Part shown: positions 31,139 through 64,000 of the stretch, piece after piece
Numbering within the stretch: position 1 is the first letter of the stretch
How the letters are laid out: each line of letters opens with the position of its first letter
Assembly (NCBI GenBank): GCA_965644295.1
Contig: CBFFRP010000107.1
Span: 29,560-93,559 of the forward strand
DNA from: Paraphysomonas bandaiensis
Lineage: Eukaryota > Protista > Chrysophyceae
Direction: 5' to 3'
DNA: 64,000 bases
Made by a program: the position numbers and the translations under genes
Notes under the pieces: model-generated
What the model was told of the DNA's origin: nothing
The model's database searches: none
Seen by the model: only the letters and a program-made list of their open reading frames with translations

Positions 31139-31917
31139 ATGTCCCAATATGTTATTCATTGTATCCTTCCTTATGCTAGAAAATGCAAAATCGTCAATGG
31201 CAGTGTTGTGATTGCAGACAAATCGGACACATTGCAGGGAACAGTAACTGACCGTACAACGAAAGTGAAAGTGATATTAGAAGATAAATCTGTGCAACTC
31301 TTAGATTTTGAATCACTTGGAGAGAAATTTGGATTTGAGTACTCTACGTACTTGCAATGTCTGCATGAATCGGTGTTTCGCAATATTTTATATTGGGGCT
31401 TGGATTCAAGTGCATGCGTTCCTTCAGCAGAAGATGCTGGTTATAGTAGTAATATTCAGCGAGGATACGTATCCGAAAATGTCTCTGTTCGATATGTGGG
31501 GCTCGTAGGAGATGTTGATGTGGGTTATGGCTTGTTTGCTGACAGCGCTCTCTCAGCAGGTTACATGGTTGGCGAATATGTAGGCGTGTTAATGGAGAAT
31601 TCTTCAGCAATATCGTCTGCGTATTGTTTAAATTATCCTTCCGCGAATAATGGTTACATCATTAATGCGAATGAAATCGGGAACTTGATACGATTTGTAA
31701 ATCATTCAGACTCACCAAATGCCCAATTCCAGCCGTATGTATACGACGATATGGTTCATGTTGTTTGTGTAAGTGTCTTGGTTAGATTTATTTATGTTGT
31801 TCTTATGTTACATGCCAGGTATGTGTTAGAAAGGTTGAGCCAGATGAACAAATTACCGTGAGCTATGGTAAAGCATATTGGGCTGCTCAAAATTATAATC
31901 CTGTGGCTATATCATGA
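31139..31917 (+). CDS. Small SET-domain lysine methyltransferase; 2 exons
   Basis: GYGLFA..GEYVG and RFVNHS, then after a short intron (~31769-31818) EQITVSYGKAYW; stop at 31915-31917. Confidence 0.85.
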
Positions 31918-53066: not shown

Positions 53067-54562
53067 TAGTGCGTTGGAACCCACGCTATGAGTAGATGAG
53101 TAGTGCTTTTATGTTGTTTGATGTGTTTAGTATTAGTCAATGTGTTCAATGTATATAATTATATGGATACTAAAGAGAATGATTATATAGAGCTTAATCT
53201 GTACTCTCTACAGCTATTTAGTGCTAGCATGGACGATGTACGAGAACCTCTGTGGTTAAGTTTATTAATGAACAGCCATATAAGACAAAAAACAGAAAAC
53301 TATACCTGTCATGGATATATACGGTAGTGAAGTACATCTGAAATCACTACCGTCTAATGGTGCAATGAATTCATATACACTATTGAATACTGTTGTACGA
53401 TGTGCTCTATTCTAGATTTGAACAGTGCACTGAAGTTGACTTTGCTATACACTTAAACCTTAATATTGCTGTGTTTAACACAATGCACTTTCAAGTAAGA
53501 AATCATAATTATTAATTATTAATCTAAACACTTCACAACATATTCATGTAACATCTGGTGAACATCTGTTTATCATATTTTTGCTTGTGGCCGACAGCAC
53601 CTCGACAACCAGCACCATCTCCACCACCGACTTACACTCTCATCTACATCTCGCCCCATCCACTCATCACATATCACATAACCCATGGCACAGGCCCACC
53701 AGACACATTGCCTAAAATCTCCCTCTGCCCTACGGTGGCAAATACCGTTCAACACAAAGTTTCACCTTATTAACCAGCTTTAAGCTCAATGTCCCTATTA
53801 AGGGTATGGATGAGTCATGTCAGTGTGCCTAGGGCCTCTTCTCCCTCTCTTCGGCCACATTTTGCTGATCACCTCGTCTCCGACAAATCTCTTGTTTTAC
53901 CACGTTGTACACGTTCCAAGCCTCACTGCCTGGCTTTGCGACTTCCACCCAACCTAACGGCTTCGGCTAAACCACGTGCCTGCACTAATGCAGCGCTTAC
54001 CGCATTCATATGCCATCACATCAGTAGACATCATAGTCTCACCTATCGAATTCTACGGTTACAACCACTCAAAACGTGGCTCGTGCGAGCAGGTCCACGC
54101 AAAAGATCCTCTGGTGCTCTCCATATGGTCACAGAATACTCTCGAACCCTCACAACTGAGCTACAGGGCTGCCTCCTGATGTCCACACAAAACAACCCAA
54201 CATGGTTTCTCTGTGGTCTATGCATCCAGCAGGTTACCCCCTCATTCTGTTCACCTATCACTCCCTCAGCCCATTCCTCTTATTGGACAGACACTGTATT
54301 CCGCATACGGTATATTCGGCTACTGTACTACAGTGCCCTACAGGATGTATACCACACAAAAACGGTGCTAGCATGCGGTACACCACGTAGCCCCGGACCC
54401 CATCAATACCCTACCAACACACACCCACTCAATCTTGCTGGTTATGAGTATATCACCTATGCAAGGCCCCAAAGTTCACGCTTAAGTCTCTTGCGTAACA
54501 ACACTCGGTTCACATACAGATATACACCAACACTCTTTAGAAGCAACTTCGACACAATTTCA

Positions 54563-56328
54563 ATGAAACGTGAAACAAATTCCAACACTTCCAGAACCTT
54601 CACCCCGAAGTTTGTTCTTCCCCCCTCATATCAACCAACCAACATTGATGCGCAGATCAATAATGCTATCAGAGAACAGAAGAAAGCCAAAGCTGACACT
54701 CCCCAGCTACAGCTCCCATCGGTACGCACCTTTCTGGGATGGGAAAATGATCTACCTGTGGGAGAGTACAAAACACTCGTCCTTACAAACATAAAAGCTG
54801 CTGATGATGCCACCTTCCTGGGGATAACACACTACCTTATCCATGAGTTGGGGTTTCCCATTCAACCCCCTACCCCCCAAGACATCGCTACCTTCAGGGC
54901 AGCCAAGGATGCACGAACGTGTTCAGACTTACCCGCTCCCACAGCGAGTAGGGTAGTCCGAGCGTTCGACCTAGGCAGACCTGGGTACGAAGTCCGACAG
55001 GGCATGGGAGCGAATGTTACCGCTGACTCATGTATGTACTCCTCCCCTCTATGCTTTGACCTCCATGTAGAAACGGGCACATCAGTCGATGACAAAGGCC
55101 TCCTTCGGACCGAACGCCGACATGTCCAGATATCACTTTTCCGAACGCCACGAGAACTCTTCGTGGGTCGCACCAAGGATGAGCCCTCGCTGATACCAGT
55201 GGCGGCTATATATGGGCTACATGCAGACTCAGCGCACACCAGACCTGCACATGCCTTTAGGTTACGAAACACGCTGGATATGCTTCTCCGAACGGGAGGT
55301 TTCCCCACGCCACCTCTATACGAAGTATTCTGGACTCTAACACACTATAGAGGCAAGACTCGAGCCACTGATAAAACATATAGGTTCTATCAGATTCTAT
55401 TACTCCACGATCCCATTCACGATCAGGATCTAAGAGCTAAATTCTATAAAGCACTCTTCAATAATGAAATAGGAGGACATGTCGAAATCAACCTCGGCTC
55501 ACTCTGTTGTAGAATGGTCAGCACTGAAACACCCACGCAAAAGCAGTCCAACTGGACACCGTCTCAAGAACTCTTCCGCATCGCTGTCTGCTCTGAAACA
55601 CTCCTATCTCCCATCCAAGTCTGGCAAGCCTGTGAGGCCATAGGTATCCCATCCACGGACATAGAGGACATCATTTGGACCGCCCGCAACCCACTCACAA
55701 GCGGGCGCAAAGAAAAAGAACGCTTAGTTGAACAAACCTACATTTACCTTGACGACAGGAATACCAAGATCAAACTCTGTTGGGAAATCTCACGCACAGG
55801 TATCGTGCCTTTACTGCGCAAAGCTCTGGGTGACGAAACTCTAAGGCTCCTCTATCACACCATAGCAGTCCCCCTGGCCTCCCTACTCAGCGGTTTCTAT
55901 ACGGCCTCCATAAGGCCCCAGACACAGCAACAAACGCCCCTCCCATAATACCGCCTCCAACGTCCCTTCAACCCTTCGGTCCAACTGTTGCTCCACAAAT
56001 GCAGACCGATACACCGCGATCGTACACTCCCAAACGACAGCGACAGATGGACACATCCCCATCAACAGAGCCAGCACCAGCTCCCACCTGCCCAGAGCTC
56101 TGCGAAATAGCTCTACACATCGCTTCAGATCTTGTACCTCTGTCAAAAATCCATGCCATCCTCGTGCAAATGGAAAACGCGGTTGCAGCTCTCTATGAGA
56201 TCGATGCTGGGGCGACTCTCACGGTACTTGATTACTATAAAAACAAGGTAGATCACAGTATCCCAGAAAGGTCCTCAGAAGAACACTCTCGGGTGGACTC
56301 GGACATCTTCGGCTCCGACTCCAACTGA
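54563..56328 (+). CDS. Putative ORF1 of the non-LTR element (one probable frameshift near 55945)
   Basis: Long ORF 53789..55948 (likely ATG at 54563, MKRETNS) continuing in 55999..56328, positioned upstream of pol. No domain recognised. Confidence 0.55.
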
Positions 56329-56376
56329 CTCCTACTGGACTGGGACACAACGAACATCAAACGTACACTCATAGAA

Positions 56377-59300
56377 GTGTCCGCAGCTGCTCACACGTGG
56401 TTATCCCCCAGTCCACACTTACATATCCATAGTTGGCCATCACCTCCTGACACAACGACCTTCGCCTGTAGCACCCACATGCGTCCACCACGTAAACCGC
56501 CAGACAAACAGTCGAGATCCACCAGTGTACATCCCACGAAAAGGCACCAAGGACCGCACTTTTCCTGTGATAATAGTGGTGATGGACCACGAAAACGGCC
56601 GGCCTCGACACAACGTAAGCGAAACAACCTCCGGCGGCTCAGTCGCAAACGAACTCTGCAACAATTTCGTGAAGGAACAATCCAGTCCCTCCCTCCACAC
56701 ATACAACGTCAACAGACACGAAACAAGCTCCGCATCCGTGCCCACAACAAGCAAGCATGGCGAGAGCATTTACAACACCTGGCACAACAGTGTGTAGACA
56801 CACACAACATCGTGACCACTCCTATACCTGACACAGCACCCACAGCTGTTACAGCACCCCCCGTCCAGAAGACTCCACACATACTATTTGCCTCCCTCCG
56901 CCCACAGTGGAGGACGAACAAGAGAGAACAATCACTGACACAAGTGTACTGCCTCAACTATTTGTGCCGCACCCTCTGCCAGCTGCCTTCACGGACCCCG
57001 GACTGCAGAATTGGTCCTTCTACTCGCCCAGCGGTCTGTTAGCCATTGCCATACACGAAGAGGTGGTTCACAGTGTCATGTCCATGCTACAATCGAGGCA
57101 CGCTTTAGAACGCATAGAACAGCACCTCAGATGTTCGCTTGAGGAGGGGAAAATGCTGGTTGCACGTCACTACACACACACAGAATACAACAACACACCA
57201 ATGGAGGGCTTCTGCGGACTAGCTGCTATTGCCGCAATATACCACAAACAACCGGAGGAGGACCACTACCCGTATTTAAATCCCGATGATCCAGCCTCGA
57301 AAGCAAAACTGCTCCAAGTCATTCAGACAAGCAGGACGGTACTTAGTACCTACACGCTCGCTGAAGCCAAGATGCTTAACTTTGCATGCATCCGGAAGAA
57401 GCTCCGACAGCAGCTAACAACGTACAACAAAGCACTACGCCGCAAACGACCAACTGCTGTCGGAATACCCCCAGAGCAATGGGGCTACACAGACATCATA
57501 GCCCTCCTGGCAGAAACCCTGAGTATACGAATTCGTATCTGGCAAGATTCACCAGTGGACCTTGGCCACAACTGGGCGTACTGGTCTACCCACCATTCCT
57601 CCTTCCTTCCACAAACTCAATTCCTTCCATCTTATGATGTGTTTTGCTCCAACGACCACTTCTTCCTGGACACCAAATACCCGGTGGAGTTGGAACTACA
57701 CGCGCTACTCGAGAGAATTCCTGACCTCGTCATCATGCGTCTCCAAAATGTGTTGCAATATCATTCCAAGGGAATGCAAGGAGTCCATCGTGCTAGGTCC
57801 ATCAACCATCCCTCCCACGCCCTTCAGGGGAAGGAATTCTCTTCCGATAACAGCGGTGACGGACCCAGCAAATCCACCCACACATTACCCTTACCCACTA
57901 AGGATGCCACCACACCGTATGCAACTCTATTTGACTATTTCCCAGTCAAACGGAGGCCACCTACCACCAACCCTACTCAACTGAACACCATGGGAACTCC
58001 AGCATTAGCCCCAGACGGCCCATCCTCACACTCCACTACCACTCCTGACATCAGGCCGGATGCACTGCCCAAGGACATTGCCACACACCCCCGACACTAC
58101 ACAGAGGGCTGGGGTCACACGCCCTTTCACTCCGATCTGCTGAACAACTGGGTTAGATACGATGAAACCCAAACCATTGCTGCCTCCCCACAGGGAAACC
58201 TTTTAAAAGAAATATATGCACACATGCTATCCCCTGCCTGTACAGACATATGGGAAGGATTCATAGCCAAGGCTTCCAGGACGGACAACTATGATCTCAT
58301 GATATCATTCACGCTACCAGAGCACAAATTGGATACCACGCACAGCGCCCTACTAGTTGCCCAGCATCTCGCGAATGGCAACAAACCCTGGGCAGACTCC
58401 ACTCATGTTGTATCTAGGCATGTGCGGACCCTTTGCCTGACAAAGGGTATTCCCTCAACAGCCACTGTTAGTCTCCGTAAGACACTCATGCAATATGAAT
58501 CCTCGACTCCACACACAGGACTACATCTAGACACGGAGGATTTCCAACTGCTACTCGATCTTCTCTCCATACCATACAGACTATGGGACGCTGTTCAACC
58601 GCACCTGGCGCCTGGTTGGGCACAGCTGTCACCATTCTCCAGACAGGCACTAACAGTGCACGCTTCTACCAACACTGTGGTAACCCATGACATCATACGC
58701 AGCCAGCATGGGTTTCACATACTCAATGCAACAAATATCCCCACCTGCATCATGCACGCTCTAACACGGACTCAGGAGCGGCTATCCTGTTTTCTACAAC
58801 ACCAGACCTCCAGACAGAGCACCACCATCCTCTGGACTTCTGAGCCGTCAACTGTACCACCTATGCTACATGAGCACAGAGAGCAACAGGAACAGAGGGA
58901 AGTAATTGCAGTCTCCTTGTCACCGAGAGCTCGACGTCAACTACGACAGATGAACCCCACGGACCGTCGACAACTCAGGCTCCATATGTGCGACATGAGC
59001 AGAGTCTACCGCCTCACCCTCAGACCCTCAGCCCTTCGCACACAACAACATATCCCTAGTGATGGGTACTGCGCATACAGCACACTCTATCATCTGCTAT
59101 ATTCTTGCTTCAAGCAGGCGACACACTCGCTCCTGTCTGAAATTAGACCTCAAACAACGCAAGGACCGTCACACGCTAGCATCTTTCATAAATACATTAG
59201 GCACCCAAGCGTTCGACATAATGCAACGGGAGTGCATGGCCCATCACACACTTCAGCCACTACGACATAAGTTAGATCACGCACAGGCCGCACTTTTAAT

Positions 59301-62300
59301 ACCTACCAAAACAACATACACTACGGAAGACGACATAACTCACTGGCTCTCAGTGCGAGAGGTCCACCTTTTAGCCTCTACTATCAACCCCTGCACGACG
59401 TGGGCGCAAAATGGTAATTACCTCAGCATTGTTGGCATCCCTACTGACAAAGTAGCTTATAACATCGCATGGAAGGTGGACGAACTTAGGGACGCTATTC
59501 GTGATAACTACTACCATGTCATACTACAAGATGCTCACTACTTCCTCTTAGACCCTGCCGGTCTTTCTACTGCCCTAGACAACGCCCTACTATCTCTTGA
59601 AAACACCTTGGCCACCAGTATACTCTCAACGGCTGACCCCATCGCTCCACCTACACTTCCCGCGGACTCAATCACGAACAACAATAGGACATCAAAGATG
59701 ACCAGCACCAGAACAACCTCGTCAAGCAGCACCAAGTTAGCACGAACAAATCGACAGATTCTGCAGGCTTCAAACCCTGGAGCACTACCATCGCACAAGA
59801 AGATGCAGTTGAAACACGCCCAAACTGCGTTGACAAGTCGATGCCAGCCAACCCGGAAAGCCAAAAAGGTCGTAAATTACGATGAAAGTGACCAACCAAC
59901 GAACCTTCACAACTCACACCCAACCACGACCACACGAACGATCAGACCAACTCCAGCACTAGATACCACCGGATGGGACAGGGACTGGTCAAGAAAGTTC
60001 TACATTGCGTACGCCGATAACACTGCCAAAGGACTATCCCTTTATGCGAAGAACACATTCCCAGCAGACGTCATCATTGCTGAGTACAAAGGCAAACGCT
60101 ATCCACTAACAAAGATGAGTCAGTCTACAAGGCGTTCTGATTACATAGTTCAAGACAGTACTGGTACCTTCGCAATAGATGGCTTTGACCAAGTCCGACA
60201 ATGTGTAACATGCGAAGCTGGGTATATTAATGACCCCCTAGCCACAAGCATGGCTAATGTCAAGTTTGTCACGAAAAATAAACGCCTCTGCGTCCGTACA
60301 ATACGTTCCATTGCTAAGGATGAAGAACTTCTCATCAACTACGGACATCACGGTATTGGTGTGATCAGCGCTGGCCACTTGAGATATTAATCCAAGCCAG
60401 GGCTGCGTACGACAGCGACATATGGCGGTGCCAATATAGCAGTATGGGACAGACTCCTTGCAGACAAGAGAGTGGAACTCCTACAGAGACCTCCAGCAGC
60501 ATCCCCAAGGATCCCTCGGGAGCAGCCATGGGACTCCGAACTCTCCACATGGAACACAAATGGCAATCCGGCATCACACACGGGCAAAGCCCAAGCTATC
60601 ATCCACGACACTTTAAGCGGCAAAAATTGGACGTGCTCCTATTACAGGATGTCCGTCTAACAGAAACTCAGGCCAACTTCTTCACGCGTATCATCGAAGA
60701 TGCACTCCAGGGAACAAGAACATGCCTCTTCCTCAGCAAGCAGCCAAAACTGACTTCAAGAGACCCACTAATGGGGGGTACGGTAGTCATAATCAGCGAA
60801 TACTGGAAGCGCCGTCTCGCCTTCACAAAGGCTGACTTTACGGGACTTGGTTTAGTGAGCCGACTAGAGCCCAAAACGTCGGTGGCGCACACCCTAGAAC
60901 ACTAATAAGCACGTCTATCTACCCCCGAAGCCAGCCCTCGCCAGGCACTTGCACATTATGGAGCAAATTGACCAAGCTAGGGAGAGCGTCCCGTGGTATC
61001 TGTACTGCTGACCCCTACAAGGCTCTCTATGCAACATCCTTACGAAATGGGGTCACCAAAGCCAGAGCCAAGGACCATACTGTCATTGTCGCCGGCGACT
61101 TCAGTGGCTCCATGGAGACAAATCCTAAAGGCAGAGACATACGACCACTTGCCGACAAGCTCCACCCGGCTGCACCACTCCACTGAGCTACCTACTCCAG
61201 GAAAACATAACATCGCTACCCTTCCACAGATTAGACAAAGGAATATCGCGGATCGATCATATTCTACACACGCCGTTACCTCCGAACATGTCTGTTACGG
61301 ACACTGGCCGCCTTGACTCCCCCTCATTACTCGCAGCGAGCCTTCGATCATCGACCGGTCTGGGTCGGTTTCACCGTACCAGTCAATCTTGATTCCCTCG
61401 TCCACCGAGCCGCACCTCCGACCCCCCCCCCGTCTCCAATGTAAACCCGAAGGACTCCAAGGAAGTACAGGCATACACACCACGACTCCTCCAACTTCAT
61501 GCACAACTACCACATTTAGACAATCGGATCGACTGCCATACTCCCTCCTATGAGGTGGCAGCCAACATGAACTAGCGGCCATCCATCACATAACCCTCCA
61601 GGCTTCGCTTGAGGCGAAGCGTCCTGCATGTACACATATGACACGCCGCATGAACGTTGTCAGCGCACACGCTCAAAGTTCAAGAATGGCTTTTTCCCCG
61701 GAAATGAGAGTAATACAGGAAGGAATGCTCATGGTTTTGCGGATTATCCAAAAGATGTTCAATTCTGCTGGATACAAACGGCATGGGGATGGCGCGGCCC
61801 CCCGGCAACCACCCCCACCCACGAAATCATCACTGCATGGTTCGCCCGATGGGACTCCTATCTCAGGAGTTCTCAGGGTCACATCAAAGGCATATCGGAC
61901 ATCAACTCTGTGCAGCCACCGCAACGCGGACCCACGAGTAATCCTGGGTTGGAACGCAAAGCAAGCCACCAAGAAAACCTTCTCCGAATTGCCTTGCGAC
62001 TGAGAGGACTTCTTCATGTGGAAGAGCCAGGACAGAAATGCGGACCAGACTCACGGCTCGCACCAAGCAGATGGAGGCACTGCTACAGCAGAAAAGATCA
62101 AGCAATTCTCTACACCGAAAATTGGTCTCAAGGTCAAAACACCACTCCGACTTACCACGAGGTGAAACAACGGACGGACACATCCTCACAACGCCGCAAG
62201 ACATTCCATGAAGGCATTAATGCGCACTTCCGTGAACATCATGCCAAACCTCCCGGACTTGACCCTGTGGCACAACAGCTCCAGGATGACCCTACATGGT

Positions 62301-64000
62301 GGAAATCACTTCTTGATCCGGGCTCAGCGACATGCCAGGAACCACTCCACCCCCGCTCGAAAATTCCTCTTCCCCTGCAACTGGGGTTACGACGGGCCCT
62401 TTGTACCAAGACCACTCCGGCCATGGCAGCCACACTCAAATCTACTCTTGCAAAAGACATCACCCAGGATGAATTCTACTGCACACTTCACTCTCTCTCC
62501 TTCAACCGCGCGCCTGACCCTCAATGGTCTCCTCCAACATGGTCAAATCCTGGCCACCGGTAGTTCAGCGAGAGGCTTACATCCTCACCAGATCTCTCTG
62601 GAAACATAAACATGTGCCCATTTGGTGGAGAGACAGGGTAATGTCTCCCATTCTCAAGAAACCAGGAGAATCCTCCCTCACTAATCTCCGACCGATTGGT
62701 CTGCTTGAAGTCAGTAGGAAAATATTAACAAGGATAATCACTCATAGAATTCTTACCGTATGGGAGGAACAGAAAGTTTTGCATCCGTCCCAGCATGGTT
62801 ATCGCTGGAGGAACGGGACGGACACAGCGATACTAAGGGTACTCGCGGCTGCAGAAGAAGCAAGACGAAAAGGCGACCAGCATATATGTACACTCTGGGA
62901 CTTCAAGAAGGCCTTCGACTCAATTGCGCCTAACCTCATGCGTCTCGCGTGGGCACGACTGGGCGTTCCGGACGATGTAGTTGACTGGTTTGGCAACTTA
63001 GATGCCGGCGGTCTAACATTTCCCTGGACACCATTCATGGCAAACAACATAGAGCCACGTTCTCTCCTTGACCTCCTGTCCGCAGACGGCCACTTCATTG
63101 CACTATTCAGTCTGGGTTTCGAAGCCGAAAGGGGTATCACCCAAGGGGGCACAGAATCCACATGCGCCTGGGTGGCACTCTACGACATCCTTCTCACGTG
63201 GCTGGACATTGAACTGTCAACAACGAGTCCAACGTTACCAACTATTCAACTCACGACTCCGACTACAGGCGAAATAAAGATCTCCTTCGCGGATGATCTT
63301 AACACAATAGCTAAATCCATACACGCTGCCCAACTCATTGCCCAACAAATATCTGCGTTCTGCGTACTTTCGGGAATGGAACTCTCAAAGTAGTTTGCAC
63401 AGTGTTTCCGATCCTACAGGATTCCAACAAGTCCTCCGACCCCATTGGCTACATCATTCTCTACGACTGGTCATGGCGCCCACACCCAGTCCCTATCCAA
63501 ACATCACTAGAGTCGATACATTACCTCGGAGCAGACCTTCCTCTCACAATCACAGACAAGGCCTCCCATGACTGGTGTCTAAAATACCTGAAAGTCGTGA
63601 CCACACACCTAGGGATCAAACAGGCCTCAGCCGGCTGTAAAGTCATGGTTATCGAGACCCAAATCATACCGACTTTGCTCTATAGAGCCACCAAAGCTTC
63701 ATGGCCGCTACACTGGTACAGAGAAATTGACGCTGCTTGCGCAACCCTCTACAGAAAGGCCCTCAGTCTAGGCCCTGGATACCCCACGGAACTGATCTAC
63801 CTCTCACTCAAGCACAACGGATTAGGTATGAAACGTTTCTCAGACTCGGCGCAGGAGCAAAAATGGGGATCTCTACAGCGCGCAATAACCCTCGGGGGAG
63901 AAGCAGGTCAAGCAGCACATTTTCTACTCACTCAGACAACAGAGCCACAGCCCCAATACCACCACCATGTTCTCAGCCTCAGGGAATGGGGAACGGAATT
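56377..64000 (+). pseudogene. Non-LTR ORF2 (OTU-like x3, SET, APE endonuclease, reverse transcriptase), broken by several frameshifts
   Basis: APE: LSTWNTNG (60541), LDVLLLQDVRL, GG, IVAGDF, SRIDHIL, DHRPVWVG (~61350). RT: LRPIGLLEVSRKIL, QHGYR, DFKKAFDSI, RGITQG, FADDL, HYLG, then YLSLKHNGLG. SET and OTU motifs are detailed in the findings. Confidence 0.88.

Follow-up and report, generated by a model that had tools for sequence, protein, structure and literature searches.

Mobile elements with a SET protein of their own have been described among DNA transposons, namely HarbingerS and MuDR of Phytophthora (Kojima & Jurka, Repbase Reports 2014, as cited in PMC12730594), a proto-Helentron of P. 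infestans (PMC4067079) and Plavaka PAG2 of the red alga Bostrychia (bioRxiv 10.1101/2025.02.11.637652). In the present study we analysed a stretch of 64000 nucleotides from Paraphysomonas bandaiensis (contig CBFFRP010000107.1, positions 29560–93559 of the forward strand; the whole stretch is hereafter called the window), which holds a copy of a long interspersed nuclear element (LINE) whose polyprotein carries a SET domain directly ahead of its apurinic/apyrimidinic endonuclease (APE) and reverse transcriptase (RT) domains. The known cases, found mostly in stramenopiles and algae, resemble this LINE in that a mobile element brings its own SET protein, for which an anti-silencing or chromatin role has been proposed. 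They are class II elements with SET as a separate accessory ORF (open reading frame), whereas in the LINE it is an in-frame domain between the N-terminal region and APE; this comparison is one of descriptions only.

Epigenetic modules have also entered retroelements, such as a DNA methyltransferase (DNMT) in dinoflagellate and charophyte retrotransposons (de Mendoza 2018, PMC5890265) and a methyl-CpG-binding domain (MBD) in arthropod Copia elements (PMC6673714). Like these and the chromodomain-bearing Gypsy elements, the LINE has such a module fused into its polyprotein, under selection and recurrently gained by unrelated classes, but the module is a histone-lysine-methyltransferase-type SET upstream of APE rather than a DNA methyltransferase or a reader. 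A screen of 172 genomes (Grau-Bove et al. 2022, bioRxiv 10.1101/2021.11.30.470311) reported SET among the chromatin genes fused with transposable element (TE) domains; as far as its text goes, only SETMAR is named, with no SET–APE–RT LINE architecture, family structure or selection analysis. As for the core of the element, I/Tad/Ingi-like LINEs and human L1 ORF2p have the same APE–RT order, target-site duplications (TSDs) and 5′ truncation, and the RT of the present LINE is followed by RNase H-like motifs in the order D-E-D-H-D and, towards the C-terminus, by a CCHC motif. The I/Tad-like groups are defined by an RNase H domain after RT. The present LINE differs from I/Tad/Ingi-like LINEs and L1 ORF2p in its one ORF of 2800–3700 aa, with ~1250 aa of additional N-terminal sequence including SET, and in having no poly(A) tail.

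A full-text literature search, with Repbase Reports and supplementary tables outside its reach, found no description of SET in a LINE polyprotein. The original prediction, which had been made from the letters of the window, was cautious about the novelty of this arrangement, and aptly so, as SET capture by transposons is published, though in the searchable literature for DNA transposons only. The LINE family extends the list of epigenetic modules taken up by mobile elements (DNMT, MBD, chromodomain and DNA-transposon SET) to LINE polyproteins.

SET, APE and RT share one reading frame in intact copies

The original prediction had placed a SET domain inside a LINE polyprotein at a copy that is itself disrupted. 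A search of the whole assembly (62.6 Mb, 669 contigs) with the SET piece gave at least 86 matches, most of them within long open frames. The copy on contig C440 (locus L037:371–9421, minus strand) has a single ATG-initiated ORF of 3016 aa, in which SET (residues 1087–1191), Exo_endo_phos (1257–1494) and RVT_1 (1951–2244) follow one another in one frame, with all three above the Pfam thresholds. The other long copies were as follows.

C433 copy: ORF of 2819 aa; SET of the same family as C440; order SET–APE–RT
C143 copy: ORF of 2788 aa; SET 66–67% identical to C440; order SET–APE–RT
C644 copy: ORF of 3731 aa; SET 47% identical to C440; a weak second SET upstream
C426 copy: open frame interrupted by the start of the locus; SET 47% identical to C440

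Four subfamilies could be distinguished, with SET identities of 47–73% among them and the same domain order in one frame. Other copies thus carry the SET segment as well (at least 35 at 91–100% identity, and three more divergent subfamilies), and it stays in frame with APE and RT in uninterrupted natural ORFs of 3016, 2819, 2788 and 3731 aa. A consensus sequence was therefore not needed, and all of our inferences were drawn from natural copies. The original prediction of a SET module encoded by the family itself is borne out by these in-frame ORFs in four subfamilies; its suggested chromatin role stays at the level of an inference and is weighed below.

The features of the window copy, all on the plus strand, are listed here.

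53714..64000: LINE copy of the 'long' subfamily, full-length at its 5′ end (5′ end in common with other copies; homology to intact copies)
53789..55948: 5′ ORF segment, 719 aa from the first ATG of the element; no recognisable domain
56907..59270: N-terminal part of the polyprotein, in which Cys...His modules recur (sequence motifs; no Pfam match)
60031..60345: SET core (Pfam SET, E 8.5e-9); the extended domain with N-flank and YW tail covers ~59980–60440
60350..60356: frameshift from frame 1 to frame 3 that truncates the SET tail; private to the window copy or to few copies
60543..61270: APE (Exo_endo_phos; residues 1257–1494 of the L037 ORF mapped on to the window), with several frameshifts
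62656..63530: RT domain (Pfam RVT_1, E 4.4e-15; tblastn)

All of the SET residues quoted in the original prediction lie inside the ORF window:59059–60390 (+), where residues 325–429 match Pfam SET at 36.2 bits. Across the window and the four subfamilies the scores were 34.6–55.3 bits, against a gathering cutoff of 22.4, and the alignment took in the whole profile (1–105 of 105). A hidden Markov model (HMM) built from relatives found window 59980–60348 at 6.5e-35. A frameshift near 60350 had been suspected of hiding the YW tail. Intact copies indeed continue as ...LINYGHHYWCDQRWPLEILIQARAAY, the window has ...LINYGHHGIGVISAGHLRY with a stop codon after it, and tblastn put the change from frame 1 to frame 3 at 60353/60354. 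The distance of ~190 bp to APE was likewise right: STWNTNG stands at ~60544, and Exo_endo_phos begins 66 aa (198 nt) past the end of SET in intact copies. The base composition (GC content and skew) runs on continuously across the SET/APE junction, as had been stated.

The complete order of the polyprotein is N-terminal Cys/His modules, SET, APE, RT, an RNase H-like region and a CCHC knuckle, with APE N-terminal to RT within one ORF (L037:371–9421, minus strand), as in APE-type LINEs. Downstream of RT, three subfamilies have in common the motifs FTDGS, YAYE, TDC, WVRSHPE and IADA, and then a CX2C...H...C knuckle. The motifs stand in the order that is canonical for RNase H, and the knuckle after them is a zinc knuckle of the LINE type; the RNase H assignment is one that we accept at the motif level only. 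No RNase H match was found in Pfam or in the profile search of the PDB; hhalign of the RNase H-like region against true RNase_H gave a weak alignment (P 0.004, probability 8%), and the C-terminal 617 aa had no meaningful match in the PDB.

In the C644 copy (L033:3656–4060, plus strand), a second SET-like stretch, far more divergent than the main SET, was observed ~1300 aa upstream of it, with a family HMM score of 20.6 and two Pfam stretches.

The family is a recently active LINE

The intact C440 copy, with a 5′ UTR (untranslated region) of ~66 nt and a 3′ UTR of ~235 nt, is flanked by a 13-bp direct repeat, the TSD TAGTAATTCATAA. Among the other copies the 5′ truncation points vary (equivalent to window positions 57356, 57571 and 58782), whereas the 3′ end is precise: all eight copies compared ended in ...CATTCACTAC and then passed directly into unrelated flanks. 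At these eight 3′ ends there was no poly(A) or simple-repeat tail, a feature that many LINE clades have, though not all, and the eight insertions had no common target in their flanks. The TSD, the 5′ truncation and the precise 3′ end show that the elements transpose by target-primed reverse transcription. Dispersed copies are many and have no long terminal repeats. Among 2425 first-look candidates, 40 were scored, and the 3′ ends of all 40 were 98–100% identical. Copies of the 'short' subfamily (the C440 type), at least 99% identical to each other, are without ~2.5 kb of the 5′ part of the long form. Judged by these features, the family is a young, recently active, high-copy APE-type non-LTR retrotransposon, i.e. 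a LINE.

The nearest solved RT structure was human L1 ORF2p (E 7e-9). No named RT relatives were found; all were metagenomic proteins without a name, apart from one contig filed under a Nitrospiraceae metagenome-assembled genome (MAG). The protein on that contig, P0154, is a LINE APE–RT fragment that matches the LINE family at 49% identity across 748 aa and at 58% in the RT core; its NCBI entry calls it a hypothetical protein from the Nitrospiraceae MAG. The contig is probably a eukaryotic one that was mis-binned into the bacterial genome.

The SET domain is under purifying selection

To see whether the SET domain is constrained, the four subfamilies (A–D) were aligned. In the SET core the amino acid identities were 73, 53, 51 and 73% for the pairs A–B, A–C, A–D and C–D; for the same pairs APE gave 71–73, 36–55, 47–53 and 70–80%, whereas the linkers, at 18–41%, were far below both. 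The non-synonymous divergence (dN) was as follows.

SET: dN 0.22 for A–B and 0.18 for C–D
APE: dN 0.18 for A–B and 0.15 for C–D
RT: dN 0.19 for A–B and 0.10 for C–D

With the synonymous divergence (dS) saturated (>1.4), omega (dN/dS) for SET came to ~0.05–0.19, the same range as for APE and RT. For the two closest subfamilies omega was ~0.35 over 1094 codons, where SET alone, with only 5–6 substitutions, was uninformative. The calculation of dN/dS on SET, which the original prediction had called for, thus gave purifying selection as strong as on APE. These comparisons show SET to be a fixed, selected component of the LINE polyprotein, which has been kept through deep divergence of the family.

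The same results bear on whether SET could be a passenger or an artefact: a host exon that a single lineage has captured, a chimera of the assembly, or a relic in decay that has no role. What speaks for this is the window copy, which is frameshifted at the SET tail and has ~30 private small indels per 3.4 kb. It is refuted by the occurrence of SET in frame in four subfamilies and at dispersed loci with omega far below 1, as well as in separate metagenome assemblies at 31–48% identity, and we consider it extremely improbable.

SET domains in other retroelements

The metagenomic proteins P0006, P0011, P0026 and P0125, which come from three different, unrelated metagenome assemblies, aligned to the C440 ORF through SET into APE at ~31% identity (P0011 over 641 residues, E 5e-82). 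The SET-then-APE junction is therefore present in more divergent lineages. In distant LINE relatives (~25% identity), SET was not found upstream of APE. Another protein, P0001, and contig L043 (ERZ27288152) were discounted as independent support, because their SET is identical to that of subfamily D and they are probably from the same or a very close species.

SET domains of the same kind were observed in retroelements of other structure. The LINE-like polyproteins P0058 and P0106 (3923 and 3532 aa; the locus of this type, L051, is scaffold_365 of metagenome ERZ19570880) run from RNase H through a weak APE to RVT_1 and on to SET, which is followed by a true Pfam OTU and by Ulp1, so that SET follows RT, whereas in the LINE family of the window it lies ahead of APE. 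Two Ty3/Gypsy lineages of the same genome have SET between RNase H and integrase within Pol. These two lineages, with ORFs of 1947 and 2890 aa, are 41–43% identical to each other, and the second has at least seven copies with identical open frames. Their loci are listed here.

Gypsy-SET loci: L045:3217–9057 (minus strand), which is G000:C476; L046, L047 and L048; G000:C252, C432, C201, C119, C123, C210 and C191

In both the LINE polyprotein and the Gypsy Pol, SET is thus in frame and not a separate ORF of the DNA-transposon kind. A maximum-likelihood tree of SET sequences joined the four LINE subfamilies in a group of their own (support 100/97), placed P0058 and P0106 with the LINE SETs of the genome (96/87), and made the Gypsy SETs the sister clade to the LINE SETs (99/96). 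Since SETs from one clade have repeatedly been gained by elements of the LINE, LINE-like and Gypsy kinds, we argue for a benefit specific to retroelements.

Three further proteins, P0030, P0038 and P0015, have non-TE architectures, and their SETs fell outside the TE-associated clades in the tree. They are multi-methyltransferase fusions from public data in which SET is joined either to PRMT5, once together with DOT1, or to a protein kinase.

Fold and conserved residues of the SET domain

Profile searches of the PDB with the SETs of the element retrieved KMT2C/D, EZH2 and EHMT2 at ~1e-10. An AlphaFold2 (AF2) model of the domain had a predicted local distance difference test (pLDDT) score of 88.5 and a predicted template modelling (pTM) score of 0.83; with this model Foldseek found active SET enzymes, its matches being SET7/9 (TMq up to 0.72), SET8, MLL3/4, PRDM1/3/9 and LegAS4, with probability 1.0. 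Profile and model together show that the domain is real, with a predicted SET fold.

A search of 1.84 billion representative proteins for relatives gave 8011 matches, 990 of them below 1e-10, and the 45 best SET sequences were aligned to represent the clade. Invariant or at least 90% conserved among these 45 were GxG, the Tyr in EYxG, two Asn residues, and in EELxxxYG the Tyr-Gly, whose Tyr holds the catalytic position, with the YW that follows. In motif I, Gly28 and Gly30 were both at least 90% kept, and in motif IV Tyr131-Gly132 was invariant or nearly so. The SAM (S-adenosylmethionine)-pocket motif, canonically NH(S/C), has kept its Asn and has changed its His; in I-N-D-P-L, which aligns to YINHSCAPN of KMT2D, Asp takes this place in at least 90% of the clade. 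The Asp, being shared clade-wide, thus characterises the clade and does not reflect decay. Read from its alignment, this ND-type SET with a YG..YW tail is an uncharacterised clade with Asp for the canonical His.

The proposed function of the SET module

TEs are usually seen as targets of histone methylation. A selected SET in an active LINE implies that the element itself writes or reads lysine methylation, and the related SETs of the Gypsy elements in the same genome and of other environmental retroelements imply the same. The reading that we prefer, with a probability of roughly 0.6, is that the SET module methylates a chromatin lysine and so biases the local chromatin for the element. The proteins of a LINE work in cis, both on the RNA that encodes them and at the nicked target; the polyprotein would therefore deliver SET to the chromatin of the integration site or of the element's own copies. 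There SET, using SAM, may methylate a lysine of a histone tail or of another chromatin protein. The local chromatin state would then be tilted in favour of the element, either because host silencing is countered or forestalled or because the target becomes easier to reach. The family offers a natural system for studying how a target-primed retrotransposon deals with nucleosomes and host silencing.

Several points weigh against this reading. The substitution of the canonical His by Asp touches the SAM pocket, and the zinc-binding post-SET cysteines are absent from the sequences, the tail (YW...W-PLEIL-QAR-AY) being a predicted helix without Cys; because of these two features, catalytic competence is not readable from the sequence; catalysis, substrate and chromatin effect are inferred only. 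As for the tail, the SET7/9 and SET8 classes are likewise without the post-SET cluster. The His is required in SET7/9 and SUV39H1, yet it is absent from active PRDM9, and the ND-type clade would tell whether catalysis can do without the canonical His. The copy in the window is not functional. The signs of expression, which count in favour of the preferred reading, are slight. In a polyA metatranscriptome (two runs, one sample), short contigs 90–99% identical to the window were found on SET (59837–60130), APE (60701–60973) and RT (61809–62300), but no RNA contig in the two runs bridged the SET–APE junction, and carry-over of DNA into the RNA libraries may lie behind the contigs that were found. 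They are weak evidence that the LINE family may be transcribed.

The same substitutions allow a different view, in which SET is kept but catalytically dead and serves as a tether that binds a histone tail or another protein and so brings the ribonucleoprotein (RNP) of the LINE to particular chromatin, in the way that chromodomains target Gypsy integrases. Both the His-to-Asp change and the loss of the post-SET cysteines are conserved clade-wide, there are weak extra matches to a PR domain (PRDM2_PR), many PR domains being without activity, and constraint alone is equally compatible with a binding role. A dead domain is harder to reconcile with the retention of catalysis-relevant residues (GxG, Asn, the motif-IV Tyr and the aromatic YW) in 45 divergent sequences, and the flanks of the eight insertions show no common target, a result that concerns their sequence only and not their chromatin state. 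Taken together, a tether seems to us rather unlikely, and methylation of a chromatin lysine is the function that we favour. The element would gain from SET under both readings.

The N-terminal Cys/His modules

Up to three paralogous Cys...His modules lie ahead of SET (window 56907–59270; L037:6572–7189, minus strand), with the motifs GFCGLAAIA...NDHFFLD, ...QHGFHIL and DGYCAYSTLYH...DAHYFLLD. The third, IP(S/A)(D/N)GYCAY...DAH(Y/F), is kept in all four subfamilies, whereas in the second the subfamilies A and B have lost the Cys that D keeps. An OTU-like cysteine protease is a reasonable guess for these modules, as yet unproven. They had no Pfam match at E≤10, and hhalign against true OTU (PF02338) aligned only 15 columns, around DGYCAY and DGNCLF, at a probability of 1.4%. 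A language-model search with the N-terminal module returned one OTU-containing cluster at 0.91. The AF2 model of the modules, from a four-sequence alignment, had a pLDDT of 49.5 and was unusable.

The company that SET keeps raises the question of whether its target is a histone at all. It co-occurs with OTU-like, OTU or Ulp1 modules in the LINE family, P0058 and P0106, and SET7/9, an enzyme with many non-histone substrates, is among its closest structural neighbours. SET might accordingly modify the polyprotein or RNP of the element itself, or a host restriction or ubiquitin-pathway factor, jointly with the N-terminal Cys/His modules. With the protease nature of the modules itself unproven, we rate a non-histone substrate as improbable.

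In a wider reading, retrotransposons of two unrelated classes in one marine protist, the LINE and the two Gypsy lineages, as well as the environmental LINE-like elements, carry TE-dedicated SETs of the ND type with a YW tail, which would actively write a histone mark where the elements integrate or on their own copies. Combined with the protease-like modules, these SETs would make up a mobile 'chromatin toolkit' for manipulating host silencing. We offer this tentatively, at somewhat less than even odds. Were it true, such elements would stand beside the DNMT-carrying retrotransposons as their histone counterpart.

The copy in the window

The window holds one copy of this repeat family, a member of the 'long' subfamily of the LINE, with its 5′ end complete and its 3′ part beyond the end of the window (64000). 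At the 5′ side, 11 other copies (99–100% identity) start at window 53713–53717, which corresponds to query positions 714–718 of window:53000–57400, and at the 3′ side the homology to intact copies reaches window 64000, equivalent to L037:2220. The total length of the long form is estimated from intact copies as ~12.4 kb. The initial 190 aa of the 719-aa 5′ ORF are 67% identical to the opening part of the one ORF that the short subfamily has.

Between 59096 and 63400 the window copy is broken by at least seven frame changes (tblastn). The stretch from APE to RT has many frameshifts in addition to the one at 60353; the original prediction had left these further frameshifts unremarked, as it had the start of the copy at ~53714 and its continuation past the end of the window. 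The RVT_1 profile match lies at window 62656–63387, and over window 62518–63387 the protein is 100% identical to that of an intact copy (tblastn). Indels at 60539, 60604 and 61049 in the APE of the window are absent from other copies. The stretch was also matched in several marine metagenomes and in sequencing runs from two organisms; contigs from other sequencing runs differ from the window at 60353 and at nearby indels and are without its private indels, and a 652-nt contig, probably from a DNA run, bridges 60280–60933 without the indels of the window.

Three copies, window 58800–62300, L002 (C422) and L030 (C42), each have ~20–40 private indels of 1–2 bases per 3.4 kb. In these three the number of private indels is about that of substitutions, and other copies have none. 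This pattern suggests either assembly or polishing errors at the repeat or an unusual, indel-prone decay. Elsewhere in the window, at 31822–31896 (plus strand), 25 residues weakly matched the SET family HMM in its C-terminal part, with a score of 12.5.

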